From Selaginella moellendorffii (taxonomy: Eukaryota; Plantae; Lycopodiophyta), in NCBI RefSeq assembly GCF_000143415.4, contig NW_003314344.1, forward strand, positions 380,336 to 444,335: a DNA stretch of 64,000 bases, in the 5' to 3' direction. The notes below the pieces were generated by a model that did no database searches, was not told the origin of the DNA, and was given only the letters and a program-made list of their open reading frames with translations. Positions within the stretch are counted from its first letter, which is position 1; every line of letters starts with the position of its first letter. Shown here piece by piece: positions 1 to 39,378 of the stretch. The translations under genes and the position numbers were made by a program.

Positions 1-2610
1 AGTTAGAGTTGTTTACACGGTCATGCCCTTTCAACGGAATAAGGAACATCGACAGAGAGGTGGGTGATGTGATCAGTCGACAGTAGCTACCTCATGACTA
101 GAGATTTCAACATGCACACGAAGTGCCGAAGCCAGTCTGCCTATACTGGCCCAAACTCAAAGATCAAGATATGGACAATATCAAAGTCATAGACAATGAT
201 GTCTTAGAGACTTAATTATCAGTGAATATACCTTAGAGTAGAACACAAAAGTATTCTAAGTAAGTTATCATCCAATAAACTAGTATTATAGGATAGGAAC
301 CACCAAGATCACTATCATTAGAAAACATAGGATTCACCACCCAACAAAATTCAATAACAAGTATATCATCAAGTACACTCAATGAGAAAACTTAACTACC
401 GAAGATTGTAGACAATATGCTAAACAACTTACCAAAGATAACTCAAAGAACACCAAGTATCAATGACTAGCAAGCAAAATGTTCGCGAATGTATCACTCG
501 AAGGAAATAACATCCCAACCTATCAGAACTACCTTGAGCAATAATCAACAGAATAGAATGAATGAAGTAAAACTAACAAACACTCATTCATGTCAACTAT
601 CACAAAAGCCAATCTGAATAGATTCCAGTCAACAATACCAAAGAACCAAAGTTGCTCAAGCAAGCGTTAGCAACATCCTACTAATGTCTCAAACCCAAGA
701 GATCAATCCAAAGCAAACCACAAAGAACATGTGGTATTGCAAAGAGCCATAAGCCATCAAAGAGAATAACTAACCATCATGAAAGATCATCAATCATCCC
801 ATCAAAAAGAGATATGCAGAATCATTGTCTAAGAAGGAATTCACCATCCCGAAGAATAGCAAATCAATCTAGATCAACGATAATCAAGCAAAACCTTTGA
901 CAAAGATAATCAATTATCCTAGATGATAATCAATCATCACCAATGATTGCTAAATGCAAATACTAATTTTAATATCGAAGCTAGGAGCCAAAATGCCTTC
1001 CCCAACAACTTCTAACAAATGGAACAATGAGCATAAAACTCAAAGAACCAAAAGCTTGAAGAAGCCTATAGCCAAGTCTTGCCTAATAATGATCACGAGT
1101 CTCATAAAAACTAACTTCAATGCTAAAAAAGAAATCGTGATGCAACCCACAATATCTTCCTCAACATATCTATAAGCCAAACTTCATAATGCCAAAGCTA
1201 ATGAAGAGCATTTCTGCATCAATCTAAAAGCTAAACACAATAAAGCTATGCCCAACAAGTGATCACTAAACAATCCTCCATGAATCCATTTACAACAACA
1301 TGTAACTCACTTTATAACAAGCACAAAAAGAATCATCAACAATCGATATATCCCGAACTCAAATCTAATAAAGACTCAAACATTCTAATATCGATCACTA
1401 ACTCTTCCACTTGCAAAGTTAGTAAAATCACTTTTCAAGGAAAAGCCAAAGCTCAACCCTTACTAAATAATCTCGTCTAAAACACAACTAACTTAAACTT
1501 GCCACTCAGCTCATTGAACATCAATACAATTGCTAATTAGCAATGCACGAATGCTAATAACACAAAGCGAAATCCAAATCATCAACACTATTTGCATCAA
1601 GACCAATGAAACTCAATATCAATCCTAAGGAAAAACATCTCATTTCACTCGAATCTCAATATTAATATTGTCAATGACAAGGCATTACTTCAATACCATC
1701 AACACTAGGACAAAGCTAGAAGAAAGCAAGAATGAATCACCACTCAAAACTCTCCAGCAACCAAGCTAACCAAAATTGAAGATACCTTAGTTAGTATCCG
1801 AAACCAATCCTTCAGCAATACTCAGTTTCAGATAACACATCATCAAGGAGTGATTCACCACATCCACGACTCAATGAAATCCAACACTACAGACTAAATG
1901 TAACCAAATGATATCAACAGAGGTAGAGTCGATATGCCAACATGAAAAACTCATGTAAGTCTAACGACACGATCCTCCGCAACACCATCCGGTAAAGCAA
2001 GCCCATCACTGCTAAATCATCATCGAGCAAAGCAAGTGTCAACAGTCCTTGATGAAGTCTACAAGTAATTACTAGTTGCAAGCAACTAACAATCACTCCT
2101 CCACTTGCCTTCACAAGACCCAAACACCAACTTTTGTCATTAAGTTATATACTTGTTTAACATGAACATGATACCCCAAGTACGAGATAAAAGTTTATAG
2201 ACAAGCACCAACTAAATGACCACTCGAATCCAACTCAACCGCAATAAGCTCACTAATGCATTTAGCTAATAGCTCTGAGCATGCCTTGAAGAGGCTAGCT
2301 ATGCCTAATCAACACTTAGTCAAAACTAAAGTGAAGACCACGAGATGGACCCATATCAGTACACAACCTCCTCATAGACACAGCTATAGTATGGGTACCA
2401 ACATCTCAACCTCAAACAACTAAGTTGGACATCATCATCCTCAGCCAAGGCACAAGGTCACCAAGACCAAGTCAAGATCAGTGAGAGCTCACTACTCTCA
2501 TAGAGTCTAATGAAATGCAAGGTGCAATCTGCCACCAAGCACAACACTTTAGATGAAAGGGGAAAATACAAAAGTTGATGTTGAAATGATTGGTTCGGGA
2601 CGAACCAACA
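1..2610. mobile_element. Probable non-coding retrotransposon-derived sequence (possible LTR end at 2610)
   Basis: Strong A/C strand skew and no credible ORF. It ends in TGTTGAAATGATTGGTTCGGGACGAACCAACA (2579-2610), a CAACA LTR-like terminus. The partner end is not in the window. Confidence 0.3.
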
Positions 2611-2945
2611 ATTCTATTCAAAACTTAAGACATATTTTCAGTTCTAGAAAAAGCTAAATAATATAAATCTAATAAGAAAATAAATATCATAAGTCAAAGA
2701 AGAAACTCTATATTACCACTAAAAAATTCGACTAAAAAGAAAACTAAATTTAGTCTTCCTCGACATCCACATCCACAAAAGGAAGAGTTCGTATAGTATT
2801 ATGCTCTCTAACTGTGGGCTCTTGTTGTATATGAGCTTGTGCCATTGTTTCTACATAACATGGCAAATTATAGCCCACATCATCAATCCATCTAATATAC
2901 ACAACCATGATGGAATTACTATAAGGAGAAATTTATACTTTATTA

Positions 2946-5900
2946 TCACCTGTTATGCAATGTCCCAAGAACACCTTCAAATGTACTCTCCTTCTCTAGT
3001 GCAAAAATTGCACACCCAGTCTCTTTAGCCGCTAGCACCATCGAACCAAAACCTACTGTAGCATCAAGCATAATCCCCTTAAGAGGACAAAACAACTTTA
3101 GGAGGATTTGCATAGCCTTTGGTGAATGGTGTCGATAACCAGGGAACTCTATATGATGGTCCTCATTGATGACATTCGGGATGATATCTGTTGAGCTATC
3201 ATATCCTGGCAATGCCAAACCTGCACGCTCATCAGCTCGTGTAATACTATGATGGCAAGAGTAGCGGCAGAGAGCATGGTAGTTCCATGCTAAAACCTAT
3301 AAGGAAAAGAGGCAATCAATTTAAGATATGAAAAATAAGGAAATGTAAACCTTTTGGATTCGGCCACCTGCTCCTTTTGTTTCGACCGGGATGTTTGAGA
3401 GTAGACAACCTGATGCAAACTCAACCAATCTAGAGTCATCATTCTCCGCCATCATTGCAAGAAGACCTCCCCAAAATAAAGAACGGGGAAGAATGACTAG
3501 CATAATGCCCTTGTATCGCAACACCTTGGATGCCACATCCACCGCTTGAGAAATATGGTCCGGTCGAAGGATGTTCTAGGATGGAGTGTCATCTTGTAAA
3601 GGTGGTAACCCATCAGGCAGATCAAAGAATGTGAGGTCGATGCCAAAAGTATTGTTCATTCCCAATCCTCGCATCCATCGATGGAACATAGAAGACTCTC
3701 GGCTCACATTGTTGCAAAGTGGAAAGTAGTCCCCAATAACTATTTCCACATTGCCAACACTTCCCATAGGAGAAAGAGGGCGAACCTAAATAGTGTTCAA
3801 AACCAGGAAATATTAAAGTTAATACATGTTTTTTTTCATACCTGTTTATGTGAAGCCGATGAAGATAACTCTTGGAGGTCGTCCTCTGTAGCAGTGGGGA
3901 GGGATGGAAAGAATGCATTTGTACGTCGATGTAAAGAGTGCTGGCTGGTTTCTCCGACATCTACAACCAAATTACATTAAGCAAAGTCATTGGAAATCAA
4001 GTTCTTACTCTCTTGGACGTCCTCACTATGGAGCTACCTTTGTATATTTCGAGCAATCGGGGCTGGACGAGCAACGGCAGTAGGATCTGAGGAATGAGCA
4101 ACTGCTATAGGATGAGATGGGGCAGGAGAGTTTTCAGCCGGGTTCTCCACTCGTTCGTCTTCGGTCTGCTCAATATGAATCTCGTCCCTGTCTTGAGGCA
4201 TCTCCACTCCCTCCAAAAGTGCCTTTACAATAAAGTAGAAACATAAGTTACTACTAGGAAATTTTACTCATCAAACCTAGATGACACTCGAGGTAGAGAT
4301 CAAGCTCAAAAGGTGACGATGGCATTTGCCTCCACAACTCCAAATACCATGGACAAAGTTCTCGCTCCCATGTAGTGGAACACTGAAACTCTGGCTCATA
4401 CATACCAAGTTTCTTCCCACCAATTAAGAGCTTGAGAAAAACACTTGCTGTGTACATTGGAGCACCTAGGCAATGATTTAAATACCTACAAAAGAGTCAT
4501 GATTAAATAAACAAGTCAATTTTTTGCAATGTACCTATATGCCATGCGACATGAGAAAAATGGTTGGCCCGGCTGATTCTTGAAATCCATAAAGCTTGAG
4601 CTGCCATCAGGAAGCCATCCATCCCCAAGCTCTTGAAGGGAAGCTCAGACATATTCTGGAAGTGTTATGCCGGTGCGGGCACTAGTAAGGAACTTCGTAT
4701 CCCATACTTGAAGTAGCTCCTCGGCAGCCGCAATACTCTGAGTGATATAGAGCTTCTCCTTCATCACATTCTCAAGTTTGCTCTCCAACCTTTTATCATT
4801 GTTACGATGCCAAGTGTTGAGGAGTTCCAAGCAAGAGGTTTGTTCGTTAAAGGAGAGCTTGCTTTTTGCGATGTTATAAATCAATTCTTTAGGTGCTTTA
4901 CCATTTCCTGCAAGGACAAGGATTTCAAAGTGGAATGAAAAAGATAAAAGGGACTAACTTACTGCCACGAGAGCATATCTCTGCAATGCAATCCAACCAA
5001 TATTTATCGCGGTGAATGTCTGCAATTGCAAGTAGCTTCTTCACCTTTGATTTCTTCGAGTTCAAAATGCGCTACTCAATTTGTCGCAGTTCAAGGTTCT
5101 TTTGCACCTCATCCGTCACTTGCGTAATCTTCAAATACGAGTTTTTCTCCGCCTTGACAATTGGCTAAAAGAAAAACTTGTGAGTAGAAAACACAAGTTC
5201 ATGCAAGAAAAGGATACCTTTGCCCAGACCGCAACCAAAAAATCCATAGGCACTTGATACCAAGTAAGCAACTCTTGGCTTTTACGTGCCACAAGCTTTG
5301 CTTGAACCACTTCCATAACTTCACGACTATACAACATCTGGATTTCGTCGAGAGAAAGCATGCCAACATATCAAAGGTGCTCAATATCATGGACCAAGGT
5401 ATGTGCTTGGAAAGCAAATTGATTAAGCTTGTAATATAGTTGGTGAGAAAAAAGGTTACAAATAAAAGATTCTTACATGTTGATCTTGTGATATGCCAAG
5501 TTGAGCCTCACAGCTTGGTTTCGATCTTGTGGCTCCACAAGTGTCACTGGAACACAAATATGTCGCTTGTCATCGTCTTGGAACTTCTCTTGGATACACC
5601 TCCAAAACGCAAGCCACCGGTGGTTTATATCAATAATGAAGAACATCCGGCCTACAAAGGCTTGTGTCTCCTTGTGGCATGCCATCAAAGTATCAAACTC
5701 TTGAGATTTCCTCTGCCATATTTGATCCCAAGTTTGCTCAATCTCATGAGTAACCATGTCTATGCAATTTGTTTCGGAAAATGATGACGACACAATAAAC
5801 GATCCAGCAGTGTGCCCGAATCTAACCTCTGTGAAAGAGGTATAAATAGCCATGTTGAGGTCGTAGGCTGAGTGCACCCAGTGACTCTACTTAAGACAGC

Positions 5901-6415
5901 AAAGTGGAATCTCAAGATGTTGGGATCCTTTCCAAGCCATTTCACCTAACACCTTGCTAATAGTTCATTCTTGAGCCTGGACAATAGTCTCACGTACTTG
6001 CTCATTCAAGATCGTGTCGGCCTCTAGCATAGTTACCACCTCATTTCTGTGACCTTCAAGAGCAGCAGCATGTCCGCCATTTCCACCACCAAGATCTGCC
6101 CCACCACCTATAGCACTAGGTGCTTCATTTCTGCCACCAAGTTCCGCACCACCACCTATGGCACTACCACCAGCAGCTTCTCCTATGCTATAGCTAGCTT
6201 CTGCATTTCCACGCTCTCTAGAACCATTTGGCTCCTGCATGCTAACACCTGGATCTGGACAACACTACTCCCACCATGGTCTTCCTCCGAAGCAGCGCTT
6301 TGAACTTGTGACATGTCCCTAGTGAATCTAGCACAACAATCTAGTTGTTTTCCTGGAGAATGGGTCCATTGAGGTTGACCGGGACACTTCTTTTGTTGTG
6401 GCATGATTTATATAT
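2946..6415 (-). pseudogene. Multi-exon gene: ParB/Srx-like domain plus beta-class amino-DNA methyltransferase-like domain (decayed)
   Basis: 5473-5877 reads GSFIVS...FFIIDINHRWLAF (ParB-like DGxHR). 3576-3767 reads IVIGD...IDLTFFDLPDG..TPS*N (motif IV DLPY-like, W-to-stop). 3321-3542 reads ASKVLRYKGIMLV. 2946-3218 reads SPKAMQILLKLFCPLKGIMLDATVGFGSMVLAAKETGCAIFALEKE (motifs X-I-II). There are short GT-AG introns, a frameshift near 5880 and in-frame stops. Confidence 0.7.
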
Positions 6416-6463
6416 CTGCATGAAAATGACAAATAAACTTGAGTAAACATTAAAAAAACCGCG

Positions 6464-6846
6464 AAGAAGTTCCCTTGGCTCGTCGTCACGGAACTGATCT
6501 TTGCAGCACCAAGGGAACAAAAAAAAAGAAGAAAAGAAGAAGTTCCCTTGGCGCTGGGAAGATCGGTTCATCACCGAACCGATCTTCCCAGCACCAGGGA
6601 AAAAAAAAAAGAAGAAAAGAAGAAGTTCCCTTGGCGCTGGGAAGATCGGTTCGTCGCTGAACCGATCTTCCCAGCACCAGGGGAAAAAACAAAAAGAAGA
6701 AAAGAAGAAGTTCCCTTGGCGCTAGGAAGATCGGTTCGTCGCTGAACCGATCTTCCCAGCACCAGGGAAAAAACAAAAAGAAGAAAAGAAGAAGTTCCCT
6801 TGGCGCTAGGAAGATCGGTTCGTCGCTGAACCGATCTTCCCAGCAC
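6464..6846. repeat. Hairpin tandem array, ~84-bp unit (left half)
   Basis: Unit is GAAGAAAAGAAGAAG-TTCCCTTGGCGCTGGGAAGATCGGTTC-GTCGCT-GAACCGATCTTCCCAGCACCAGGGAA-A-tract, recurring near 6541, 6624, 6709 and 6793. The last unit is cut by the transposon insertion. Confidence 0.95.
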
Positions 6847-8476
6847 ATGCTCTATTTCGTTAAAGTGGGATTTATTCAGTAAAATGGGACTAGGTACAAA
6901 TTTTCAAGTATTTGAAAATGACGTGAAATTATATGTTTTTTGTCCAGGGGCTAGACATATCTGGGGCATGGTGACTAGCGCGGTGACTTTGTGTCCAGAC
7001 TGAGTCCATCTGGTTGTATAATAAATCTCATTGTCAAGGTGAACAAGCCGAATCTGAAGCTAAAGAAGAGCGATCGCATGCGCGCACACACTATTTGTTT
7101 GTTCATTGAGCGTGTGGTGAGCTTTCCAAGATGAACGTCATTCCTATTAGCCAGACATATAACTTAATGGTGAGAACATTTAGATATTATTCAATGTTAT
7201 CTTTTTCTAATGAATCTAATTGTGAAGGTGTAGCAAGAGGCATTGCTAGTCTAGAGAAGTCATTTAACTCATTTGACCCTTAGTGTATTTTCATGAAACT
7301 AAATAACATTCATATTATTAAGGAATTTCTCTAGTACCTTTTTTTTATGACTTAGAGGCTTGCATTTCTTTCAAAGGTGATTTAGTAAAAGGCCTGAGGG
7401 CACATGCCATTCTATTTCTCAGACCGGTATTAAGATATACTAGTGCAAAGGGAAAAAGGTATTTGGTGATCAAGTAAATGGCATGAGGGCACACGCCATT
7501 ATAAGCCTAAGTGCTAGTGGACACCTCCTTTTTGGTACTCTCAGCGGTACTATCATCCTCTCTGGGTCAGTTGTTTTGCTTTGGATTGTTGTCTCTGACG
7601 TTACTGGGGCGTTCTCGATAGTTGTTAATGTTGCCGTTTGTTCAGAAAAATGATCACCTGGAGTATAGTACGGGGAGTTTGGAAGACTTATATATTCTAC
7701 ATCTTCACCTATCTCCTTCTCCGTCTCCTTTTCTGCCTTACTTACAGATTTTGTGCTTGCCATGAGAACACTCTTCACCCTAAAATATGGAGTTTGTTGT
7801 GTTATAAAAGGAAACCAACACACACGCTACAAGGGAATGATGGTACATAAAGCACGTAAGCCCACAATATGGGTTTATGTGCCATTAATATGGGCCACAC
7901 GCCATATTATTAGATTTATGCACGTGTGATTGGTAAATGCATATGTCACATCATCTTTGTTTTACCTCACACACTATATCAGGCCTAATGAACCATATCA
8001 CATGTGCACACATGCTATATATATGGAGAAGTATTATGCAAGGATAGAAAAATTCAATGCATGATTGTGGAGAGCAATGGCATGAAGCCACATGCTAAAT
8101 AACATTTTAGAGAAAGAATTAAAATAAAAACATGCAAACAATACTGAGTGGACCAAGACTTAGAAGTGCACAATTGAATGAGGTATTTCTAATAAATATT
8201 TCACTCACCTCATATAGGAATGGCTACCACTCTCAAATGGCATATCACCTCATGCCATCACCTCGCAATTTGTTATAACAATCCGATGAATTCATATTCG
8301 GCTTGTTCACCTTGAACTTTAAGTAAGATTTGCTAGAACAACTAAGAATTTATACTTGTTATTTGTATCATCTCACCTAGGAATGGCGTAAGGCCACATG
8401 CCATCACGCCTCCTCTGATTCAGATTCGGATTGTTCACCTTGAAATAAAATACATTAGAAACTTAGTAAAGGAATA

Positions 8477-11302
8477 TTAATGAATCTCACCTTGAACCCG
8501 GGTTATGAATGCTCTTGCTGCATCTCTTGCATGGTCTAACAAGGTGATGGTGGCACTCTGCTTCCACATCCAACCATGCACAACATTATCCACCGATATG
8601 CTCATGCTGGGATCCCTTGGATTCAGCACCCATCTCTTTTCTAGGCAATCCTTCGTATATCCGGAACTTGGCTTGAACCACTCCACAGTTACATTGAAGG
8701 AGTTAGTTTCCGCATCCTCCTCTGCATCAGTGATGCAGCGCCCCACCCATATCATTTATTTTTTATTACTGGGTCTGACAAGCATGACCATTCCTTTGCA
8801 GACCTGTACTGGATTGAATGCTGAATTCGGCTTCTTGTTCCTCGGCCCACAATAGTGATCCTCAACATCGTTATCTGTCACTGCATTTCCAGAGGACATT
8901 GTTCCGCTACTATCTGGTGCTCTGGGTTCTGGCCAAAAGGACGCTTCCAATTCTTCATATACAACCGGCCCATTTTGGATAGCAGATATAATCTTCTCCC
9001 AGTATTCGAGCAAAGGCTTGCACCTCTTAAAATAGGATTCTCCACCAAACACCAACCCCCTCTTCCAGAAGGCAATATGCTGTCTAATCCCGGCCACTAT
9101 ACTTTCCTAGTCTTTGAGTCCATCCAGGTGCATCGGCCGTGGGGAACCCTGAGGAATCATAGGTTCCCCAGTTATGGGATTTCTCTTGAAGAGTTCAATG
9201 CCGTCCACTGGCAGCCACACTGTGTCCCATTCTCTCATCTTGTACCTCATCACTAGAGCACTGTCACGCATGCTGAAATGAAACTGAAGAGGCTTGGAGT
9301 GGCCAATCAGCGTTTCGGATCCGTCCCTGATGTAGCCTCTTACAAACCCCTTAAAGTCTGGAACCTCTGTCACAAGTGCAGCTTCAACAGTGCCTTTGAT
9401 GCAATTTTGGAATTCATCGTAGAGTTGTGGGAGGGTGAGGACATTGGATCGCCGAAGGGACTCTGCCAGGTGACTGAACATGGCATCGACGTCTTCATGA
9501 GTGTGCCCAACCATGAGAAAGCCAAGTGTAACCGTTTCAAATATGCCTTTGGCAACAAGCATCACCAAGTACGCGAAGACGTACATGTTTTTGTTCTCAC
9601 TGCCAGCATTGTCTGTTTGGAGCAGAAGATGGGGTGGAAGGCCACATCGGCCGCAAGAACTTCCTTGAGATTCTGCTTCGTTTGGATGAGGCTGTGCATT
9701 CACCGGGCGACCAGCCTCGTCGGAATGGCATGAGGCCTCACGTGATAACCCTACAATCTGACGGCCAACATATTCATTGGGGTGGCATGGGGCCCCACGC
9801 GATACTGCAAGCCTTTGCTCCTCCTCCAGCTGAACCCTGTATGGGGTTTGATCGACAAGGGCCTTATGCAAGGGTTGGCCGTTCAGCTCAGTCTGTGCAC
9901 TTTGCAGAGACATTAAGTGTTTTGCTAGGGATGCAATCATCATGTTTGCACCCCCGCCACCCCATAGAGGTACAAAGAAGTTCCTATAGTTCTGGGCACC
10001 ATGCCCATGAGCGATTATGCCAAACAAAGACACAGGCAGCTGCATGGATGAAGAGATTGCCTTGGGGGCAGGATTGAGTCGAGGTAAGCACGTCTTTTTC
10101 TAGTCCATTTTGTCGTGGATGATGCAGAGGTAAGAGTCAGGTCTCTCCATGGAGAGAATCCTGTTATGATAATATGCAGTTCTGTAGCTTCTCTGCTCGA
10201 TGTTGTGGTCGAGCCGCCTTCTAACCAACGTCTCTCGCTCTTGAGCGATACAAAAATTCTTCGACAAAGCCATTTTGATAGCAGTGCACTCGTCACACTT
10301 TGAAAAGCTGGAGTACTTTCCTATACTCACATCCCTGAACCTGTTGCTCCACAATCTACTAAATCTAGATTGGCTCAGCTTCCTATAGCCATTACTCTGG
10401 AGTTCCCGATTCACATCTTCCAATATGGCCCCCTTGGTATACATGGAAGGGAGAACTCGTTGGGTGTCTCGAGTTCCATCTTCCAAGAGGCGGGTTTTAT
10501 GTGGTTGCTGCTCGCTACATGTCTCGACAAACCTCTTGAAGATTGCCTCTCCATATACAACATGACCCCTGGTTTTGTGAGTACCATCGTTCCCATGGAC
10601 TGCCTGTTGAACCCTTTGTTCCTCGAACTCAGTTTTGATTCTGTAGAATGTGGTTCGAGGGACTCCATAAATGATTCTCCATGCCTTCATGCAGACCAAA
10701 CCCCTCTGGAAGACCATGCCCCCCACCTGATGTTCTGAAGCATCAACAGATGACCGTAATGCCTCATACACAAAATTGCGAGCTGCCTTCCAGGACAATG
10801 TCTTGTATCTTGCTCTCTCCTCTTCAATAGCATCCCAATCAGCATGTTGACAGCACCTCCTCTTGCAACAAGCAACTGTCGAGACCATTCGAACCTCCAT
10901 CTCCATTTTCTACCTTTTCGGTTCGTTGCTCAAATCCCTTTGGCTGCACTTTAGGAAGGTGTACTTTCTTTTCCCATAAAGAGATGTTCTGTCATCAGTT
11001 GTAGTGGTGTTTGATTGTGAATCCTTCACATTCTCAAACACTAAGTGCCTCAATTTCCACCGCACAATGCTTCCAATAGTCAGACTGTTTTCTTCTGTGT
11101 TAACAACCTCTAAAATTGCAACTCCAATATCATCCCAGCCCAATTCTTGATTAGCAACTGCATCTCTTGGATCGACAATTGTGGCTAAGCCCTCAGCTAC
11201 CACCTCCCCCTCGGGGTTGTTTAGAAACACCTTTGCCTGAATCCATGTAGCACAGTTCTTAAGATCCACGGAGGGAACATGCATCACACTTGCGAAGGCC
11301 AT
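8477..11302 (-). pseudogene. Sola-like (DUF7869-type) DDD transposase, one ~940-codon frame with 4 premature stops
   Basis: ORFs 10910-11302, 10100-10906, 9107-10045, 8756-9097 and 8477-8755 share one frame. Motifs: CCKRRCC, VCMKAW, SKCDECT, IIHDKMD*KK, LLLQTDNAGSENKN, FLMVGHTHEDVDAMFS. Confidence 0.85.
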
Positions 11303-11639
11303 TCTGAAAGTGCAGAAAAGAAGTTAAGACCATACAAAAAATAATTGGAGAATGGCCTAAATCATAACATACCAAACAACCTTAATAGCATGAGACCACA
11401 TGCCATTATTCAAACATGCTATTGACACCCACGTGAAATTTCGCATTCACAAAATTGGCATGAGGCCTCATGCCATCTTGATATACACACAGCTGCAGGC
11501 AAGTAAAAACATACATGACAATACGCTAGCCATGAAATTGCAAGGGCCCAAGATGGCATGTGGCCTCATGCCATTTCTAAATGTGGTCCTAAGCCATTCC
11601 ATGGTGAACATACCAGGAAGCACAAGTGTCGAATATCAA

Positions 11640-11880
11640 GAGGAAGCGGTAGCCACACCAAAGACAGTGCCGCTCGCAACACCGCAACTACTTGTAGCAC
11701 CGCTCGCAACACCACAACTGCTCATAGCGCCGCTTGCACAAACTACCACTCGCATAAACTGCCGCTCGCAATGGCGCTCACAATGCCGCAACCGCTCGTA
11801 GACGCATAAACCACAGCTCACAATGCCGCTTACACAAGCAGCGCTCACTGCGCTCAGCGGAACCAAGAACACGGCGCACA
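11640..11880. repeat. Short imperfect tandem repeats (GCCGCTCGCAA-like) upstream of the transposase
   Basis: Repeated (G/A)CCGCTCGCAA/CACCGCAAC units are visible. Confidence 0.7.
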
Positions 11881-11923
11881 AAAATGATAGACCTAGGAAT
11901 GAGTTCGAGAATTCAAAAATAAC

Positions 11924-13845
11924 ACACGCTTGAACGTCACATCAAATCCTCTGGCAAACCAGATCTTATGATTCCTCTGACAAATTTCAAACTGAGTAGC
12001 TTCTAGACTTTGCTGTCGGAGGTTGAACTTTGTCACATCATGTCCTTGCCTCGATCCAGCTGTGCCATGTCAGTGATTCGAACTTTGCCATGCCACGTCA
12101 GCGATCCGCGCCAAGATTATTCGCCATGTAAAGGAATAATTATGCTGTGTGTGTACGTCCATTTATGGCAATATAAGGCCACACACCATTCAAAGAATAA
12201 TGCTAGTCGAGCATTTTTTGGTGCATTTTTTGGTTCAAAATTGCATGAGCCCACACGCTATAAAGTTTACCTGTACCAAAAATAGAAACAGCTTTATTTA
12301 CTTGGGAATTTAAGTGGTTGAGGCATTTTTAAACTTACAAACACATGCCCTACTTACATTCCTTTGGTTGCTTAAAATTCAAAAATATTATAAACCTTTC
12401 TTTTTGCATTTTCAATGTTTTCAATTATGGTTTTTGATTTTCGCAGGACTAGCCTAGTAATCTATTTGCATCCCGTCATGTTTATAGCTAGCTTTCGTTT
12501 GTCCCCTTCGCTAGCCTGAGATACATCTGCTTGGCATCTGCCTCTTACAGCATTTGCCCAGAAAGGGCATCTTTCTTCACACAGCATTTGCCACATGTTT
12601 AGGGTTTAGGGTTTAAGGTTTAGCAATTCAGTAGCTTGATAAACATGCAAATACAGAACTTGATGCAAAATCCTTTGATATGTCACAATGCCCCTAGGAC
12701 CATAAACACATTTCAATAGAGAGGGTCCTTTCATTTCATAACTCCTTACGTAGATCTTGGTGAAACTAAAGTTAGTGAAGTTAGTTTTTTGTGATCCCGC
12801 ATCTGATTGTGATGTCCCTTTGCAGTGTCGATGGAAAGGTCAATGCACACCAAACTGTAAAATCTTGGAGCAAAATAACGGTCGGATCTATGGCAAATGC
12901 CCCTGAAATATTGTAAGGCTCGTGTGGTCTCATATGGTGTCTGATCGAGATCCTTCTTTGCAGGGTCATCAAGAAAGACATTGTATACCATTCTGTAAAA
13001 TCTAGTTGTGATCTAACGGTTGGATCTCCAGAAAACTCAAAAAAATCTCGCGCATGTCAGAATATTCTAGGAATATACTCCTATGTGCCCCTGAAAATGG
13101 CATGCGGCCCCACGCCATTCAAGAGATAACGCCAAATGACGCCGAGCATTTTTTGGTGCATTTTTTGGGATCAAAATTGCATGAGCCCACACGCTTGAAC
13201 GTCACATCAAATCCTCTGACAAACCAGATATTATAATTCCTCTGACAAATTTCAAACTGAGTAGCTTCTAGACTTTGCTGTCGGACGTTGAACTTTGTCA
13301 CATCATGTCCTTGCCTCGATCCAGCTGTGCCATGTCAGTGATTCGAACTTTGCCATGCTATGTCAGCGATCCGCGCCAAGATTATTCGCCGTGTAACTGC
13401 TCGGCATCTGCCTCTTACAGCATTTGCCCAGAAAGGGCATCTTTCTTCACGCAGCATTTGCCACATGTTTAGGGTTTAGGGTATAGCAATTCAATAGCTT
13501 GATAAACATGCAAATACAGAACTTGATGCAAAATCCTTTGATATGTCAGGACTATAAACACATTTCAATAGAGAGGGTCCTTTCATTTCATAACTCCTTA
13601 CGTAGATCTTGGTGAAACTAGAGTTAGTGAAGTTAGTTTTTTGTGATCCCGCATCTGATTATGATGTCCCTTTGCAGTGTCGATGGAAAGGTTAATGCAC
13701 ACACAACTGTAGAATCTTGGAGCAAAATAACAGTCAGATTTATGGCAAATGCCCCTGAAACATTGTAAGGCTCGTGTGGTCTCATGTGGTGTCCGATCGA
13801 GATCCTTCTTTGCAGGGTCATCAAGAAGGACATTGTATACCATTC
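11924..13845. repeat. Internal direct duplication in the spacer between the two transposon genes
   Basis: 11924-12129 matches 13188-13393, and 12531-12993 matches 13403-13845 at high identity. Both copies contain TTTAGGG repeats (12598-12623, 13468-13481). Confidence 0.9.
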
Positions 13846-14737
13846 TTTATTTAGCTGAACATTTGGCATTTTTGGAAATACAAGATGCTTTGGAATATCC
13901 AATCATGCATGGTATAAATATAGCGAGGGTATTAAATGATATCCCAATCATGATCTTTCTTTTGGATTTCGCGTGCATGCAGTCCGAGGAATGATGATGT
14001 TGCGGATTTCTTTTAGATTTCACGTGCATGCATGCGCGCGGCGATCCAGAAATTAATGGTGGCGCCCAAGTCCGAGGAATGATGACGTTGCGGGATTACC
14101 AACCGTCGTGACATTTCGCGCGTGTGAGATTAGGTTTTGCATTTTGCTTCGTACTCGTGCTTGCATCGCGCTCCCACTCGCGATCACGCTCACATTCGCG
14201 CTCATCTACCTTCTCTACAGGTTTCTCGTGTGCATCGGCGTCCACTCGCGCTTGCATCACACTCGCGCTTGCATCGCGCTCGTGTGCATCGGCGTCCACT
14301 TCAAGACACACCCAGTTTGTAACTTCGCCGCCAACTTCGCCACCCACACGCAGCCCACTTGGCATCCCGGGAGATTTCAGCGCCACTCTCCAACTGTAAG
14401 TGGCAGAGTAGCCTTGCTGCTACGATCCGCTACACACATAGTGCACATTCGCTAGCGAGTCTGGCCTTGATTGTCACGCCTCCATTCGGCTTCAAATGGT
14501 AAGTCTTTTAGGCCAAGTAGAAAATGGCATGAGGCCACATGCCATTCAGTAGCAACATTGGCATGCACCGATTGGGCTCTCGAGTGCAGTCCGGTTACAG
14601 ATGGCGTGTAGCCTCACGCCATCTTAGGATGCAGCCTCAAGACATCTGATGCAGTGGTGAATGGCGTGTGGCCTCACGTTATTTCCAGTTGCTAGCTTTT
14701 CATCTGTCAACTCTAATTGTTGTGCATTTCTGAACAG

Positions 14738-17700
14738 GTGAGGAATTGCGTTCTTCTTCCAGCCACTGTCAATGTGGATGCAGAGAAGGGGGAGGAGCTC
14801 ACCAGTTGGACTTTCGGGATGGAAGGCGAGGATCTGAGGCTGTACAATACAGATGGTGGGAGAAAAGAATGCATGGGGATCCTCATCCAAGTGACAGACA
14901 CTCCATGCAGTTCCATGCAAGAATATGGACTGGCACTTGTGGTAGAAACAGCGTCCGCCTTCAAGATCCACCTTGCACATCCTAGCGGCTTCCCGGAGGG
15001 GGGCAGCGGCTATGAGGAATTCCTAGAGGGAGATAGGGAGAGGTTGCTCTGGGTTCAACTAAAGAAGCCACAAAAACCAGAACAAGGATGTGCACTAGCA
15101 ACTAGCGCCTGGCAGGTAAGCCTCGTTGCATGTGGCATAGCATGTGGCCTCACGCCATTTCCATTGCAGGAATTCTCGAGTTTTCTCTCGAAAACACTGG
15201 GGGTCAATGACACACTCAGCATCCATAACATTCTACTCGCGACAAAAGTTGTTTTTAACAAATGGGTAGATGTGTTGAGGAAGTACCATGACGGGGAGTT
15301 GCTAAACTCAATGGGTGTGGAGGACGGCCGGAAGCCCAATGATTTGAAGCTCAACGCCTTGCGTTTCTCGCGGTCTCTAGACGACGACGACCTTCTGACA
15401 GTGGCTAATGCTCTTCTACGTGGTGAGGTAGTCTTCAACAAGACCAAAATGACTCCCGGCCATATTGTGACATAGGAGGACTTGTGCACGACTCTGAGAG
15501 CTCATGCGCTATTGAAGGATTGGATCTTCGAGCAAGTGGCCGTGGAGAGGGTGAGCATCGACACCACGCAAGAGATGATGGAAGAGCTGGAGTTGTCAAA
15601 TGAAGACATCGACGAGTACGTGAAGGGGGCCCCCAAGTTCATCGATCTGCTGCGGGATGCCACGAAAAGTAAAGCTGAGAAGTTGGATCAGTATCCAAAT
15701 TTCATTAAAAGGGATGTCGACCGCCGGCTTCAGAAACAGCTCGACCCCGCAGCAGAGGCCTATCGAGAACCTTACTGGGTATACGTGAATTCGGATGAGG
15801 ATCAAAGGTGGAGGAGCATCGTTTCCCGCGGAGATGAGCAGGTCAAGAACATCTTTTGTGTGATGAACTTCACAAATGAGGAGATCACTCATGCAGACGA
15901 AGTCAGCTCCATCATTGACTTAATGGTGGGACTTGCGGAGGTGGAATCGTGAGTCCACTATATGATCTACGACTCCGAATCCTATCACAAGTTCTGGAAG
16001 GCCTTGAACGAGGTGAAGGCTCGGTTGAAAGGCAAGGAGATGCGGGAGATCCATGGGATAATGGCTAAGAAGAAGATACCGACGAATGTCCGCATCTTCA
16101 CACTTGCCCTTGTTATTAGTCTTGTAGCAGAGTGGGACTGGAGTGACTTCCCAGCTTCATTCGACAAGGCCGATCGAATTGATCTGAGGGAGGTCAATTT
16201 ACCCGTGCCTGAGGAACTGAAGATGGCTATAGAGCTTTCGAATCCAAAGAAAGCTCCAGGTGCAGCATGGGAAATGCTCAGCTGGGTCTTCAACGCAATA
16301 GCGGGTGGGTCACCTACTTCCGACTCCAAGGGCAAATGCGTTGTCGAGTACAACTGCGGCAGACTATTCTTTTGAGCCGCACTACTCAAGGGTGTCCCGT
16401 GTGTTGCGGTGACAAACTCCATTGAAGAGGTGACTTCAATGGAGCATATAATTACAGTTGCCAAAGAAAAACAGTATTTTCTCTGTGAATCTGGTGAGTA
16501 CGCACTTTAAGTTTAAATGTTATCTCACAAGCTCTGTATGCAGGAGCGTGGCCACCCCCAGATGCTGAAACGGCGTTAACAGCTACTGTTGAAGATACCC
16601 ATGTTGGGCCGAGCTCACAACCTGCACAAGGTAAGGTCACGTGAGGCCTCACGCCATTTTGATTATAGATCGTTGTGAATATTCAGACACGAGGACTGAA
16701 AAGCGCACTGGTGGCGCATCGAAGAAGGATAAACAGACAAGCAATAGGAAAAAAGGAGGTACAAATTATATTTGCAATGGCGTGTGGTCTCATGCCATTC
16801 CTTGCAGGAGACACTTCTTCAAAGGCAAAACAGGCAAGCACCAGCCAAACTCAAACTGACAGTGGTCATAAAAAGCGAAAGCACGTTGGACAGTCGTCGG
16901 GATCAGAGGCGTTTGATTCGAAAAGGAAGAAGGGCAACGAAAAGATGATAGGTAATGTCTCGCGGTTATGGCGTGTGTGCTCATGCCATTCATTGCAGAT
17001 CAAGGGCTAAGTGAAAGCAGCCAATCACCACCTCCTGACTCAGATTCCTATGGCGGACTCCCCTTCCCCAATCTCAATGGAGAGGTACAATGGATGAGGG
17101 ATGCTTTTCAAGTCAGGGCCACGTTTTTCTCATCTCATCATCTTCGAAGGGTGCAAGAACGTGCAGAAACCATGTTAAGACAGTCGGGTGAGGATACGGT
17201 CCTAGGTCACGCACTAAAACAAGCTATGGATGTCTTGTATTTTGAGATGGAGACTCGGCCAGATGATTTTCCCAAGATGGTCCTGGAAGAACAAGCCATC
17301 TAGCCTGAGCAGCCTATGGAAGAAATGCAGGAGGGGGATGAGGAGCCAGAGAAAGATAATGAGCAGGAAGAGCAGAAGGACGAAGAGGAGGACAAAGAAG
17401 AGGAGGACGAAGAAGAGGAGGACGAAGAAGAGGAGGACGAAGAGGACTTGGATGGTCCTCACAATGGTGACGATCACAATAACGACGACGACGATGATGA
17501 CGACGATGGCCAGCCTGAGGTGGCCAAAGAGCAGCGGAGGAAGGTCATACAAGGTAAACCATCAGGTAAATAATAGTACATCCATTCCTAACCTTTTACC
17601 ATTTCTAACATTGTCCATGTAGGTCGCAGAGCAAATGGTAAGTAGAGATTATTCAGTTGAATTAAGATACAAACTCTAGCCTTTAGTGTCGAGGAAGGAT

Positions 17701-18958
17701 AGTGCTAAGCAAGGGTCAAAACGTATGTCCAATCCTTCAGAATCAGCAATGCGCCCAAGTGATATCGGTCCTAGTTCCTCAATAGTAGTTGATGGTAAAT
17801 ACAGTATAGTCGATTCAATGTGCTAATGGCACCAGCTGAAATGGCGTGTGATCACATGCCATCGGAACCACCCCATGCCACTATTGAGCCAGTTGTACCA
17901 GAGTCTACAGCTGAAATGGCATGTGCCCACACGCCATCGAATGCGATTGACCCCACATTGCAGAGGAGAGTATTTCCGCCCTTCACGTTTCCTCGACCAA
18001 AACCCTCTCAACGACCATCGGGAGCACCATTCGCTAATATTGTAGATGGTAAAATTGACTTGTACCATTTTTTATGCTGACGCATTTCATTTTAGAGTCA
18101 CGGCGAAGGTACTGTATCGTTTTTGATTTGAACGGTGTCCTTTTCTCCCATGAGCGTGGCTCATCCTCGAATGTCACTGCACCCTCCAAAGCCTGCGGTC
18201 GCAAGTTGGTCAAAAGAGACAGATTCACATTAATCACACGGGAGAAACTGCGGGATCTAATAATGACCATGCGACACTTAAAACAGAGGGCCGGGTTCAA
18301 TTTGCAATTGGGAGTTTGGACATCCATGATGCGCCACAATGCATTAACGTTGCTACAGATGATGCACGATCAAACGCGAGTAATATTACCATTTGACTTT
18401 CTCCTAACGCAGGAGGATTGCTTGACTATGGTCCATGTGAGGGGTAGCAAGCCCATCTTCGTCAAGCCAGAGGCTGTAGTGATGAACCGGACTGCTAGCT
18501 CAAGTGAAATCCTCATCATCGATGACTCGCCGATTAAAACTGCAGCGAACACGCACACATATGCAGTGCACCCCATCTCTTGCAGTATGGAAACTAGGGA
18601 GAAGAAACCGTATGTTCTGGGGGACCTTGCAAAACGGCTTGGAGCGATGGTGATAGAGAACTGGCCAGTCCAGGAGGTGGCTGCAGAAGTCAACCAAATG
18701 GCAGATGGAACGGTATATCAGAAGCCATTTGATCGGACAGACACCAGTCATCATTTATGGCATGTATATTGTCTAGCCAAGCACTATCCGCATCTCCATA
18801 ATCTGCTCAACCGGATGGGTTCTTCGACCACTGAACATGAGCGTGGACGTATTAGAGAAGAGATGGCATTACTATTGGGTTTAAATCCTGATAGTGTGGA
18901 GAGTGATGAAATTCCAAGATTATTGTATAGGCATTGGAGGCAAAAAATAACAGTTTGA
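14738..18958 (+). pseudogene. Transposon cargo gene: helical region, degenerate MTase-like fold, acidic linker and FCP1/NIF-type HAD phosphatase domain
   Basis: ORFs 14717-15475, 15482-15952 and 15962-16375 are in frame across single stops. The motif KKAPGAAWEMLSWVF...KGKCVVEYNCGRLFF*AALLKGVPCVAV is MTase-like. Phase-1 introns (16494-16543, 16631-16686, 16759-16807, 16952-16998, 17554-17622, 17638-17686, 17795 to 17835 or 17910, 18049-18095) chain in frame into 18096-18958. Confidence 0.6.
18074..18958 (+). CDS. FCP1-homology (NIF/HAD) phosphatase-like domain, open terminal exon
   Basis: CIVFDLNGVL (motif I, DLNG variant), LGVWTSMMRHN (motif II), LLTQEDC, KPIFVK, ILIIDDSPIKTAAN (motif IV). 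Confidence 0.85.
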   Translation: MLTHFILESRRRYCIVFDLNGVLFSHERGSSSNVTAPSKACGRKLVKRDRFTLITREKLRDLIMTMRHLKQRAGFNLQLGVWTSMMRHNALTLLQMMHDQTRVILPFDFLLTQEDCLTMVHVRGSKPIFVKPEAVVMNRTASSSEILIIDDSPIKTAANTHTYAVHPISCSMETREKKPYVLGDLAKRLGAMVIENWPVQEVAAEVNQMADGTVYQKPFDRTDTSHHLWHVYCLAKHYPHLHNLLNRMGSSTTEHERGRIREEMALLLGLNPDSVESDEIPRLLYRHWRQKITV

Positions 18959-19400
18959 GATGGCATGTATTTATTTAAAAATGTAACTTATTATGGCATG
19001 GGGTTCCATGCCATTGTATTAATATTAAAAGACAATTCTTTGAGAGGATTTGCATTATACTAGAAGTGTTACAGCATGTTATTGGAAGTCTACGAAGTTG
19101 TTTTATTAATAAGGGGAAAGTAAAGATTGAATGGGGACTTGGGCTCCACCTAGACTCGGAGCAACTGAGCCAATATTAAAAGGATGGAAAGAAATTGGAC
19201 GACGATGACAAAGAGAAGAGAGAGGTGAAGCAGTGGCAGGGGGAGGAGAAGTGATTGAGTAGACATTTCCTTGTTTAAAATAAAATGGCATGTGCCTTAA
19301 TGCAGTTGAATTTTGTTATATTTATATACTATATAAAGGTTTGGAAACCTTATTTTACAAGTGGGATAATGACAATTCCCACTTTAACGAAATAGAGCTT

Positions 19401-19990
19401 GCACCAGGGAAAAAAAAAAAGAAGAAAAGAAGAAATTCCCTTGGCACTGGGAAGATCAGTTCGTCGCCGAACCGATCTTCACAGCACCAAGGGAACAAAA
19501 AAAAAGAAGAAAAGAAGAAGTTCCCTTGGTGCTGGGAAGATCAGTTTGTCGCCGAACCAATCTTCCCAGCACCAAGGGAAAAAAAAAAGAAGAAAAGAAG
19601 AAGTTCCCTTAGCGCTGGGAAGATCGGTTCGTCACCGAACCGATCTTCCCAGCACCAAGGGAAAAGAAAAAGAAGAAAAGAAGAAGTTCCCTTGGCGCTG
19701 GGAAGATCAGTTCGTTGCTGAACCAATCTTCCCAGGACCAAGGGAAAAAAAAAAGAAGAAAAGAAGAAGTTCCCTTGGCGCTGGGAAGATCAATTCGTCG
19801 CCAAACCGATCTTCCCAGCACCAAGGGAAAAAAAACAGAAGAAAAGAAGAAGTTCCCTTGGCGCTGGGAAGATCGGTTCGTTGCCGAACTGATCTTCTTA
19901 GCGCCAATGGAACGACAAGAAACAAAAAAAAAACCCAAAACCTGATGTGCTGGGAAGATTGGTTCGCTGCCAAGCTGATCATTCCAGCAC
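19401..19990. repeat. Hairpin tandem array, ~84-bp unit (right half)
   Basis: Same unit and orientation as 6464-6846. About six units (near 19434, 19519, 19602, 19685, 19768, 19851) plus a degenerate one. Confidence 0.95.
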
Positions 19991-20173
19991 GAAGTAGCCA
20001 TGAGGCACAAATTACTTGCAAGCTAGGAGCAAAAGATGGGGAGATGGAAAAGCAGCAGAGAGAGGCATACCTTGATTGAGGAGTGTCTTTCTAGTGTCTT
20101 GAAGAGCATCTAACATCTAGATTGAGAAGCATCTTGAAGCATTCAAGCGTTTTTCTCTTGCCCTTCCTTGCTC

Positions 20174-20270
20174 AAACCCTAGCAGTAAAACCCTAAAAAT
20201 TAACGGTCACAATCAATGGTCATGATCAATGGTCATGATCAACGGTCACGATCAATGGTCACAATCAATT
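20174..20270 (-). promoter_or_regulatory. Putative promoter/TSS region of the ParB-MTase gene: telo-boxes and 13-bp tandem repeat
   Basis: AAACCCTA occurs twice (20174-20194). (ATCAA(T/C)GGTCA(C/T)G)-like repeats run 20203-20268. A minus-strand donor-like site lies near 20070. Confidence 0.35.
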
Positions 20271-21454
20271 TTTTAACAGTACTTGGACAAATCCATTATG
20301 AACATAGATTTCATGTGTTCTTTCCAAGGAGACAATCATTCAATGCTTTAGATATTAATTGTAAAATTGATTGTGAGAGGAATAATACTGTTGAAATGAA
20401 TGGGGTTATGAGCAAGAGGCATTGATTAATTGCGAGAGTTGTAGCATTAATTGCTTATTCTCCCTTTCATCTCCATGTTCTTTTCCCTTCAAAAGAGTTT
20501 CATTCTTTTGTGATAAGTGAGAGAGACTTAAGCTCGAAAAAGTTGGTTCATGCGCCGCCCAAGGAGCGAAGGGACAAGAGCCCGGAGCAACTTGGAACAG
20601 TCATGGAACAACTAGCATCCCAATGCCAGGACTAGCACACAAAATGGAGCCAAATGGAGTCTAGCGCTATTTTGGCATACCGGTAGCCTAACGTGAGGAT
20701 ATGGGTACTCCACCAGCTAACATGGAATGGAACTTGGGCTTAGATCCAAGCCGGATGCAGAACAAAGATAAGCACGCAAGTGGGAGCTAAACTATGCCTC
20801 AGGTTGGTCGGCCATACCCGACCTACCCACTATCCCTACTATACATTTGGAAGCCCCACAGCCCCCTCCCACCCCCCTGAGGAACACACGCTTTGGGCTT
20901 TCACCCCAAGCCTCCCTTAGTATCAGGAATTAGTCTCTGGGACAAGCTCGAAACTTACTAAATATGGAATGGCGCTAGAATGTGAATTTGGACACGGGAT
21001 AAACACCATTGTGTTCAGGCTGATCTCTACATTCCGTAGATATGCCAAATAGAAAATCTAGACACTTTCCATAATTAGCATTTGGGACCAAATTGAGACT
21101 AACACAAAAGGGCATGATAGCGAGGGTGTTTGGCAGACACGGTAAACTATCATCCGGTGATATTGAGGGACTAATCTCAATACGCGATTGTCAAGCCAGT
21201 GCAAGACAGAGCAAAAGAGAACTAAGAGCCAAGACAAGTATGCTTAACTAGAAACACATAAGAGTTCCTACTTTATGTCCATCTGGCTAAGTATAGGTGC
21301 TAAGCCCAATTTACTAACACTTGAACAAAAGGGACTAATAAAGGAAACTAGCAATACCGACCTCTTGCCATCGTGGCAATAAGGTAAGAGTGTCCATAAG
21401 GACTGGCCGACAGGTAACTTTCGATACCTGAAGTCACATTTGTGACATGTTTGG

Positions 21455-38213: not shown

Positions 38214-39378
38214 ATTGGTCGACACTAGCTGGTCTAGGAAATATCGTGTCTTTACTTTTCCAAACGTCACAGTTTGAAAGAAAGATGAAAAGGCTGGTAC
38301 CTCTCACACAAATAACATGATCTCGTCTTGAATGTATGCTTTACTACTGTCACGAATGCTCCCAAGAGCGCTTAAAGAGGAAGTCCCTCACATTTTTTAT
38401 CTTAGAGATCATGTCCTATTTATTTGACAATTGGCATTTAGAATTTAGTTATATCTAGAATATATTTAAATATTCTAGCATCATGTTTATAAGTATGTTC
38501 TCTATTATGTTCATTCAATAAATTATATAAGATTAAGATGAACAAATAAATGCAAAATATAATTTTAGAATATTGAACATGTGAGTGCTTGGAATATGGA
38601 AAGGGAATTTAGAAAATATGCATATCAATTAACCCAAAAACCTTAGCTTATATACATAAGTGAGTGGTTTGGATTGAAACCAATCTAACGGTTATCAAAA
38701 TCCCACTATGCTAATATTAATATACAGCATCGTAACTGTATACTTAGACCTCACATCATCCCTCTTCTCAGAATAATGGAAGACCATCAGAGTTCTTTTG
38801 TATATGGGCTGGAATCTGGAGGAACGTTAGGAGGAGGCATTGGCAGATTTGTAGGTGGTCTAAGTTGTTTCTGATCCCTTTGCATGAAGTGTTTCAACCA
38901 TTGCACATGCATAATTTCTGGGAGATTGGCTTGCTAGACATCATGCTGAACGTCATAAACTTACAGTCCAACTTGCCACAACACCTAATACAATCCTTTC
39001 CACTAAGCAAGGAGCCCCTTAGAAAAACTACGTATCGTAAGATGGGGAAAACAGACTAACACTAAATTATCCACTTTATACTCCACAGATGAACGATGAT
39101 AGGAGTTGTAGCACCATTGTTATCCCTCTTGTACGGCCTAAGTGTTCGGCAGACTTTTCTTGGACAAGTGGAAGAATGATCGTCAAATACTGATCCTACG
39201 ACCTAGCATTGGCAACTCGTGGCAATCACGAAGGTAAACTCAGTTTTGTTGGTAATATTGGATCATGACCATATAGAAGTTTATATGGTGAAGCACCAAT
39301 ATAACTCTACACCTCTGTAACATATGCATACCAAAAAGACGACAAATAACCATCCCAATCCGAATGTTGAAAGTTCAC

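Follow-up and report, generated by a model that had tools for sequence, protein, structure and literature searches.

What a gene with the motifs of a DNA amino-methyltransferase is doing in the DNA of a lycophyte, and whether it could still function, is the question raised by positions 2,946 to 6,415 of a 64,000-nucleotide stretch of Selaginella moellendorffii contig NW_003314344.1, which is called the window below. The answer favored here, with a probability of about 0.72, is that the window gene is the dead accessory gene of a Selaginella-specific Mutator-like transposon, and that its intact counterpart encodes a protein with a ParB/Srx-like region and a methyltransferase fold, which serves the element. 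Its relatives are the young copies L001-L006, the copies L007 and L008 of an older subfamily, and L009, which is the locus of the gene LOC9661604.

Structure and decay of the window gene

Six-frame translation places a multi-exon gene on the minus strand of the window, from 6404 to 2946, with an ATG at 6402-6404 and a stop codon at 2946-2948. The motifs quoted in the original prediction, which was made from the sequence alone, are all found at the expected place and in the expected order on this strand: FFIIDINHR at 5617-5643, DLTFFDLPDG at 3609-3638, KVLRYKG at 3507-3527, and the S-adenosylmethionine (SAM)-binding block PKAMQ...FALE at 2994-3122. The introns that had been proposed are also present, and the intron-exon structure is that of the intact relatives. 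The features of the copy are the following.

2564..2945, minus strand: non-coding 3' end of the element, which lacks the final ~60 bp with the terminal inverted repeat; the similarity to L007 (89%) stops at 2564.
2946..3290, minus strand: last exon; its motif X-like region, motif I D-x3-G-x-G, and motif II E form the SAM-binding half of the methyltransferase fold.
3351..3785, minus strand: exon with the GDY motif, strand beta4 with motif IV FFDLPDG, and KVLRYKG; broken by TAG 3576-3578.
3836..3970, minus strand: small linker exon with approximate limits, which matches the L001 exon FFPSLPTATDDDLEEL.
4281..5164, minus strand: three exons (4281-4466, 4528-4905, and 4967-5164) of a central, mostly helical region, with stops TGA 4645-4647 and TAG 5072-5074.
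5218..6024, minus strand: ParB/Srx-like region, exons 5218-5427 and 5479-6024, with stops TGA 5371-5373, TAG 5887-5889, and TGA 5965-5967.
6025..6404, minus strand: N-terminal exon of low complexity, rich in Gly and Ala, which begins with the ATG and has an apparent frameshift near 6260, compared with the open L001 exon 6997-7929.
6464..6846, no strand: proximal palindrome array, units of ~60 nt with a period of ~83 bp and the core GATCGGTTC..GAACCGATC, cut at 6846/6847 by a 12.5-kb transposon.
19401..20863, no strand: distal palindrome array (19436-19913) and remnants of the region toward the lost transposase gene; L008 7242-9780 matches window 20863-19670 at 73-79% identity.

The reading frame is interrupted by the six in-frame stops of this list, among which TAG 3576-3578 is a change of Trp to stop after DDTPS, and by the apparent frameshift near 6260, which lies in an exon that the intact relatives keep open. 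L007 continues past the breakpoint of the window copy into the terminus ...GAGCTTAGCTCAAAAACTACCTAGCCCC, which is common to L007 and L001, and the subterminal motif TTGGTTCG..CGAACCAA is present in the window at 2590-2608. No transposase homologue was found in the window, and the palindrome array is split at 6846/19401 by the insertion of the 12.5-kb transposon. With six stops and one frameshift, with its terminal repeat and transposase missing, and with its array split by an insertion, the window copy is therefore a non-functional pseudogene, the fossil of a transposon accessory gene, and the decay claimed in the original prediction is confirmed.

The palindrome of L001 was also sought in the window, where only the subterminal motif matched; the window palindrome is longer and diverged and has in common only the core CGGTTC..GAACCG. 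Pfam searches with the window's own open reading frame pieces gave nothing relevant. Over window 2500-6900, three 2026 RNA-seq runs gave only 4 partial reads at 90-95% identity, a result of little weight given that it has no positive control, and none of the indexed RNA runs contains the stretch.

The transposon family

The last exon and the exon with DINHR, used as queries, matched only S. moellendorffii proteins. One protein, P0001, is encoded identically at the six loci L001-L006, which have in common a block of ~8.85 kb (about 2133-10984 in L001) at 99.6-99.9% identity. The block of L001 is bounded by imperfect terminal inverted repeats, GAGCCCGGGTAGGTTTTGAGCTCA... / ...GAGCTCAAAAACTACCCAGCCCC, and the copies have target-site duplications of 8-9 bp: AACAGAGT is found on both sides of L004, GTGAATGAG at the left of L001 and the right of L003, and GTGATTGC at the left of L002 and the right of L005. 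These six near-identical copies with their repeats bear out the mobile multi-copy family that had been postulated for the gene. The duplications that are common to different loci (L001:2125-2140, L003:10980-11000, L002:2130-2150, and L005:7795-7815) suggest that near-identical copies were merged in the assembly or have recombined ectopically.

The L001 block has two genes. The homologue of the window gene is on the plus strand at 6857-10448, and a putative transposase is on the minus strand, divergent from it. For the transposase core, 66 of 100 atlas matches by protein-language-model features belong to clusters of PF10551, the family of Mutator-like elements (MULEs), with a score of 0.91, and its C-terminus has a visible SWIM-like CxC..CxH pattern (Pfam SWIM E 0.13). 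Between the two genes, at 6170-6730, there is an array of at least six palindromes with the core GTCGGTTCGCGCGCGAACCGAC. All seven accessory-gene exons that were checked are open in five of the six young copies, and judged by its sequence, the young element is Mutator-like, has a second gene, and is probably still autonomous.

In its DNA the window copy is closest to L007 (89% identity) and L008 (82%) and only ~68% identical to the young family, which places it in the older subfamily. L008 has the same two-gene layout as L001, with a divergent transposase upstream, and L007 keeps the terminal sequence of L001; the two-gene architecture is thus ancestral to both subfamilies.

The annotated gene models of L001 (698-738 aa, L001:6857-10831) do not end at the stop of the SAM-binding exon, 10448, but at 10831. 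This exon is absent from the fragment model P0009, either because alternative splicing leaves out the SAM-binding half or because the annotation is at fault.

The methyltransferase domain

A protein-language-model search with the last exon of the window places 77 of 100 neighbors in PF01555. The profile A1, which was built from the family-only sequences of this exon and searched against 1.84 billion representative proteins, gave 17 matches, and those inspected, beyond Selaginella and two artefacts, have E 3e-5 to 1e-3 and are beta-class methyltransferases of bacterial or phage type; the artefacts, P0006 and P0008, were rejected as tandem repeats. Since a profile made of the family only retrieves bacterial beta-class enzymes, the resemblance is not due to chance. 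The intact last exon of L001 matches positions 169-218 of 221 of PF01555 (E 2e-4, 21.7 bits), NCBIfam PRK13699 (E 8.5e-6), and a PHROG DNA methyltransferase (E 4e-6). The methyltransferase region of P0005, a protein of the paralogue LOC9661604, matches PADLOC mad2 (E 2.5e-7), Type II MTase (5e-5), and PHROG DNA methyltransferases (E 1.4e-5). The alignment of the family with its bacterial matches has an hhalign probability of 98.8% over 79 C-terminal columns, and about 80 columns are alignable between the family and the bacterial enzymes.

The order of the motifs is permuted. FFDLPDG precedes D-x3-G-x-G in the window gene as well as in L001 and P0005, and with MAFFT and HMMER the family IGDY...IDFIFFDLPDG is in register with the bacterial GDC...IDLIVADPPYG. 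The SAM motifs LDATxGFGS / VDATAGCGS and ALEKE / AIEVD align with the bacterial LDPFxGSGS and GIEKE, and the motif I D-x3-G-x-G and the glutamate of motif II are conserved.

The AlphaFold 2 (AF2) model of P0005:340-627 has a pLDDT (predicted local distance difference test) of 72.5 and a pTM (predicted template modeling score) of 0.76, and motif IV ends a confident strand, beta4. Over the whole domain, Foldseek matches this model to CcrM, M.BceJIV, TTHA0409, M1.HpyAVI, bdelloid N4CMT, M.PvuII, M.MboIIA, and M.RsrI, with E 2e-11 to 1e-7 and TM 0.5-0.6, and the best match is CcrM (E 2e-11, TM 0.59, 284 columns). Further matches of the model are AFDB clusters with the name 'DNA methylase N-4/N-6'. 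Sequence profiles and predicted fold show the C-terminal domain to be a homologue of the beta-class (permuted) N6/N4 amino-methyltransferases, in which motif IV precedes motif I as the original prediction had read it, and it probably binds SAM.

Strong matches to the Protein Data Bank (PDB) obtained with the alignment A4 were discounted as circular, given that A4 contains bacterial methyltransferases. Four clusters from the fold search, listed in AFDB as 'DNA methylase N-4/N-6 domain-containing protein' (A0A388LEZ3, A0A388JU24, A0A388LX61, and A0A388MEC1), probably have Chara braunii accessions; if this attribution holds, proteins of the PF01555 type may occur more widely among streptophytes.

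The ParB/Srx-like N-terminus

The N-terminal region has a hydrophobic strand followed by D-G-x-H-R, which is FWVIDGNHRWLA in L001 and FFVVDGNHRLLA in P0020, the other protein of LOC9661604. In the window counterpart, FFIIDINHRWLA, the Gly is lost and DGNHR is degraded to DINHR. At the DGNHR site of both L001 and P0020 there are weak matches to TIGR03187 'DGQHR domain' (E 0.007-0.008) and to phrog_1033 'ParB-like partition protein' (E 0.009-0.014), and the atlas feature neighbors of the region have ParB_N-like models. No PADLOC or PDB match to the N-terminus was found, and tblastn against phages gave chance matches only. Membership in the ParB/Srx group is considered likely on these motifs and profiles.

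The best neighbors of P0020:40-215 are unnamed cnidarian proteins and ascomycete DUF3723 proteins, with models that resemble ParB_N. ParB-like domains may thus form a larger family in eukaryotes, perhaps associated with transposons.

Selection and the host paralogue

Substitution rates were obtained over about 750 aligned codons. Between L001 and the window gene the proportion of nonsynonymous differences (pN) is 0.20 and that of synonymous differences (pS) 0.69, with a ratio of the corresponding rates (dN/dS) of about 0.125, and the gene was therefore under functional constraint (purifying selection) while the transposon lineages diverged. Between the window gene and L007 dN/dS is 0.52, which is consistent with partly neutral decay. 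Between L001 and LOC9661604 pN is 0.34 and pS is saturated.

LOC9661604 (P0005/P0020) is an intact paralogue at L009:10001-13177, which is S. moellendorffii GL377567.1:3908782-3911958. Its neighbors are RPL29, a CLE-like gene, a PH_SMPa gene, SINA/TRAF, GSHPx, and an ABC transporter, and no terminal inverted repeat, palindromes, or transposase were found near it. The intron positions of LOC9661604, where checked, are those of the transposon copies and of the window gene. Either the paralogue was domesticated from the transposon, or the transposon acquired its accessory gene from it in an ancient capture.

Role of the accessory protein

In the favored reading the intact element consists of two divergent genes that flank the palindrome array. 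One of them would be a MULE/SWIM-type transposase and the other a protein of ~700 aa, predicted to have a ParB/Srx-like region with DGNHR, a helical middle region, and a C-terminal permuted beta-class methyltransferase fold. Purifying selection during the divergence of the transposon lineages argues that this protein serves the element. It would act on the element's own DNA and would probably recognize the palindrome array, by analogy with the recognition of parS by ParB or of its repeats by VANC. There it would leave a non-canonical methyl mark or, as a pseudoenzyme that binds SAM and DNA, aid transposition or counter silencing.

Several results weigh against this account. A match of the transposase to the PF10551 hidden Markov model was not found, and the MULE assignment draws on language-model features and motifs. 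No methyltransferase match reaches a curated threshold: the best PF01555 match, 21.7 bits, lies under the gathering cut-off of 26.7, and P0005 has 13.8 bits. The family-only profile has no match in the PDB; in single-sequence and family-only PDB searches no methyltransferase match was significant, with 2zie at E 0.35 and a chance match to GspG at 0.06. The alignment behind the good AF2 model included bacterial methyltransferase rows, and its fold match is not fully independent. For the ParB-like N-terminus, which was part of the original prediction, the two weak profiles agree in two paralogues at E about 0.01, but no Pfam ParB match was found and the AF2 model of the N-terminal 285 residues, with a pLDDT of 40.6, is unusable. 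Palindrome binding and enzymatic activity are purely inferred, and the change of Tyr to Asp in motif IV argues against canonical base methylation, so that canonical N6A/N4C catalysis is doubtful.

Motif IV and its consequences

Motif IV reads DLPD in the window gene, L001, and the gene-model fragments derived from L001, and DMPD in LOC9661604, so that every copy examined has D-[L/M]-P-D. HMMER aligns the family DlPdG with the DPPYG of M.BceJIV, and the canonical (D/N/S)-P-P-(Y/F/W) is not matched. The HPTxKP motif that precedes motif I is lost family-wide and is replaced by YRHRS / YRYRS. The sequence TPSW / SPW, which lies 12 residues downstream, was considered as motif IV and rejected, as its Trp aligns with the helix-start Trp after DPPY in the bacterial enzymes. 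The original prediction had taken DLPD for a decayed DLPY; however, FFDLPDG is found in the young copies that are intact, and FFDMPDG in the paralogue, at 48% identity, so the loss of the aromatic residue and of the first Pro is a conserved character of the family and not a product of decay. It had also held that a family without both the canonical motif IV and the SAM motif would be an inactive relic; the former is lost family-wide, but the latter is kept. As far as the sequence can tell, a non-canonical or inactive enzyme is more likely than a standard writer of N6-methyladenine (6mA) or N4-methylcytosine (4mC).

In one tentative but serious alternative, the methyltransferase domain is a pseudoenzyme, and the protein, an accessory factor able to bind DNA and SAM, would target or protect the element without methylation. 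It would be comparable to METTL14, to the methyltransferase domain of DIRS1, and to VANC-like anti-silencing. The non-canonical motifs IV and X of the whole family and the conserved palindrome array, which adjoins the gene in both old and young lineages, agree with it, and inactive transposon-borne methyltransferase domains occur in DIRS1 (Iyer et al. 2016, PMC4738411). A purely structural role, however, would not require the SAM-binding residues that are kept.

These residues belong to the evidence for an active DNA amino-methyltransferase, a 6mA or 4mC writer as put forward in the original prediction, for which D-[L/M]-P-D would be a functional variant of motif IV. Motif I and the motif II glutamate are kept across paralogues that are 46-48% identical, residues that pseudoenzymes often lose; the first Asp of motif IV and its place at the end of beta4 are retained, and purifying selection is strong. 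In canonical enzymes the aromatic residue of motif IV stacks on the flipped base. This residue is an Asp in every lineage of the family, where the first Pro is also replaced by Leu or Met and HPTxKP is lost, and we know of no active amino-methyltransferase with an acidic fourth position in motif IV. Such activity is accordingly judged unlikely.

Far less probable is a more elaborate version, in which the ParB-methyltransferase would be an active non-canonical DNA-modifying enzyme that is targeted by its ParB-like part to the element's own palindromes and marks the element against silencing, and LOC9661604 would have been domesticated to write or read this mark in host chromatin. If true, a transposon would have given rise to an amino-methylation system in a land plant.

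That the window feature is a decayed duplicate of an ordinary host gene, LOC9661604, and unrelated to the transposon is hardly credible, for although LOC9661604 lies among host genes without transposon hallmarks and has intron positions in common with the window gene, the window protein is 67% identical to the transposon-borne L001 and 46% to LOC9661604, its closest relatives carry the transposon terminus (L007) and a divergent transposase (L008), and the same palindrome array lies upstream of the window gene.

Relation to known systems

The closest precedent is found in red algae, whose Plavaka, Mutator, and Zisupton transposons carry PAG2 (PF01555 and SET) and PAG3 (ParB-like and 2-oxoglutarate (2OG) oxygenase) proteins (10.1101/2025.02.11.637652). 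Tandem inverted-repeat arrays adjoin PAG3, and the authors propose binding and modification of the element itself (10.1101/2025.02.11.637652). The likeness to the Selaginella element is one of architecture: both are DDE DNA transposons with ParB-like and PF01555-type accessory modules and with inverted-repeat arrays beside the accessory gene. Unlike the red-algal elements, the Selaginella element fuses both modules in one protein, without SET or 2OG, its carrier is a compact MULE of 8.85 kb, its host is a lycophyte land plant, and its motif IV is D-[L/M]-P-D. No red-algal protein is found among the A1 last-exon profile matches. The Selaginella element is a MULE-borne land-plant variant of this theme with a single-gene fusion.

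The prokaryotic and phage beta-class enzymes, such as CcrM, M.BceJIV, M.RsrI, M.PvuII, and the YhdJ-like PRK13699, have in common with the family the domain order (GD motif, beta4 with motif IV, and C-terminal motifs I and II), the fold, and the SAM-binding residues. The family differs from them by the change of DPPY to D-[L/M]-P-D, the loss of HPTxKP, and an insert of ~25-40 residues between the GD motif and beta4. Its gene is eukaryotic, with at least seven introns, and the methyltransferase domain is fused to a helical region of ~350 aa and a ParB-like domain. The prokaryotic origin suggested in the original prediction is plausible.

Bdelloid N4CMT and Marchantia DN4MT1 are also eukaryotic genes with a beta-class N6_N4 methyltransferase fold, and the N4CMT structures 8s9m, 8s9n, and 8s9o match the AF2 model at E about 1e-8; the relation of the Selaginella family to both enzymes is one of fold. 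N4CMT (PMC8885841) and DN4MT1 (bioRxiv 10.1101/2021.02.12.428880) are single-locus host genes with canonical motif IV and demonstrated 4mC activity. The motif IV of DN4MT1 is the canonical TSPPY (bioRxiv 10.1101/2021.02.12.428880), and N4CMT carries a chromodomain (PMC8885841). The bdelloid enzyme was stated to have no eukaryotic homologues (Rodriguez et al. 2022, PMC8885841). In contrast to both genes, the Selaginella family is transposon-borne, multi-copy, and fused to a ParB-like region, and its motif IV is non-canonical. Among the eukaryotic N6A-methyltransferase clades, Iyer et al. 2016 (PMC4738411) describe a chlorophyte/chytrid Dam family fused to ParB-HTH and a clade of haptophytes that goes back to ParB-terminase loci of phages; they do not mention Selaginella. 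Full-text literature searches found no paper that describes the Selaginella element.

To our knowledge, few transposons have accessory genes of their own that modify chromatin or DNA, and the sole studied plant case of self-directed epigenetic action is VANDAL/VANC. VANC of the Arabidopsis MULE VANDAL is a model of self-directed anti-silencing, as cited in 10.1101/2025.02.11.637652. Both VANDAL and the Selaginella element are Mutator-like and have an extra gene beside short repeated motifs in their own non-coding DNA, but VANC is not a methyltransferase or ParB homologue and has no sequence or fold relation to the accessory protein. The Selaginella element is compact and apparently recently active, in a small sequenced lycophyte genome, with an accessory gene beside a putative binding-site array, and its non-transposon paralogue is a possible case of domestication or a capture source. 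It raises the questions of whether amino-methylation, or a pseudo-methyltransferase, can enter the genome of a land plant by way of a transposon, of ParB-like recognition of palindrome arrays in eukaryotic elements, and of the role of the D-[L/M]-P-D motif IV.

Neighboring elements

The 12.5-kb transposon that splits the array (window 6847-19400) is also found less than 10 kb from at least three other copies, at L001:14485-20448, L007:19010-21755, and L008:88-2010, at 95-98% identity. This recurrent neighbor may be a very abundant element, or may reflect transposon islands or an insertion preference. An element of ~5 kb is inserted in the ParB-like exon region of L007 (2450-7471) and is also found at window 39378-44973, at 85-92% identity.

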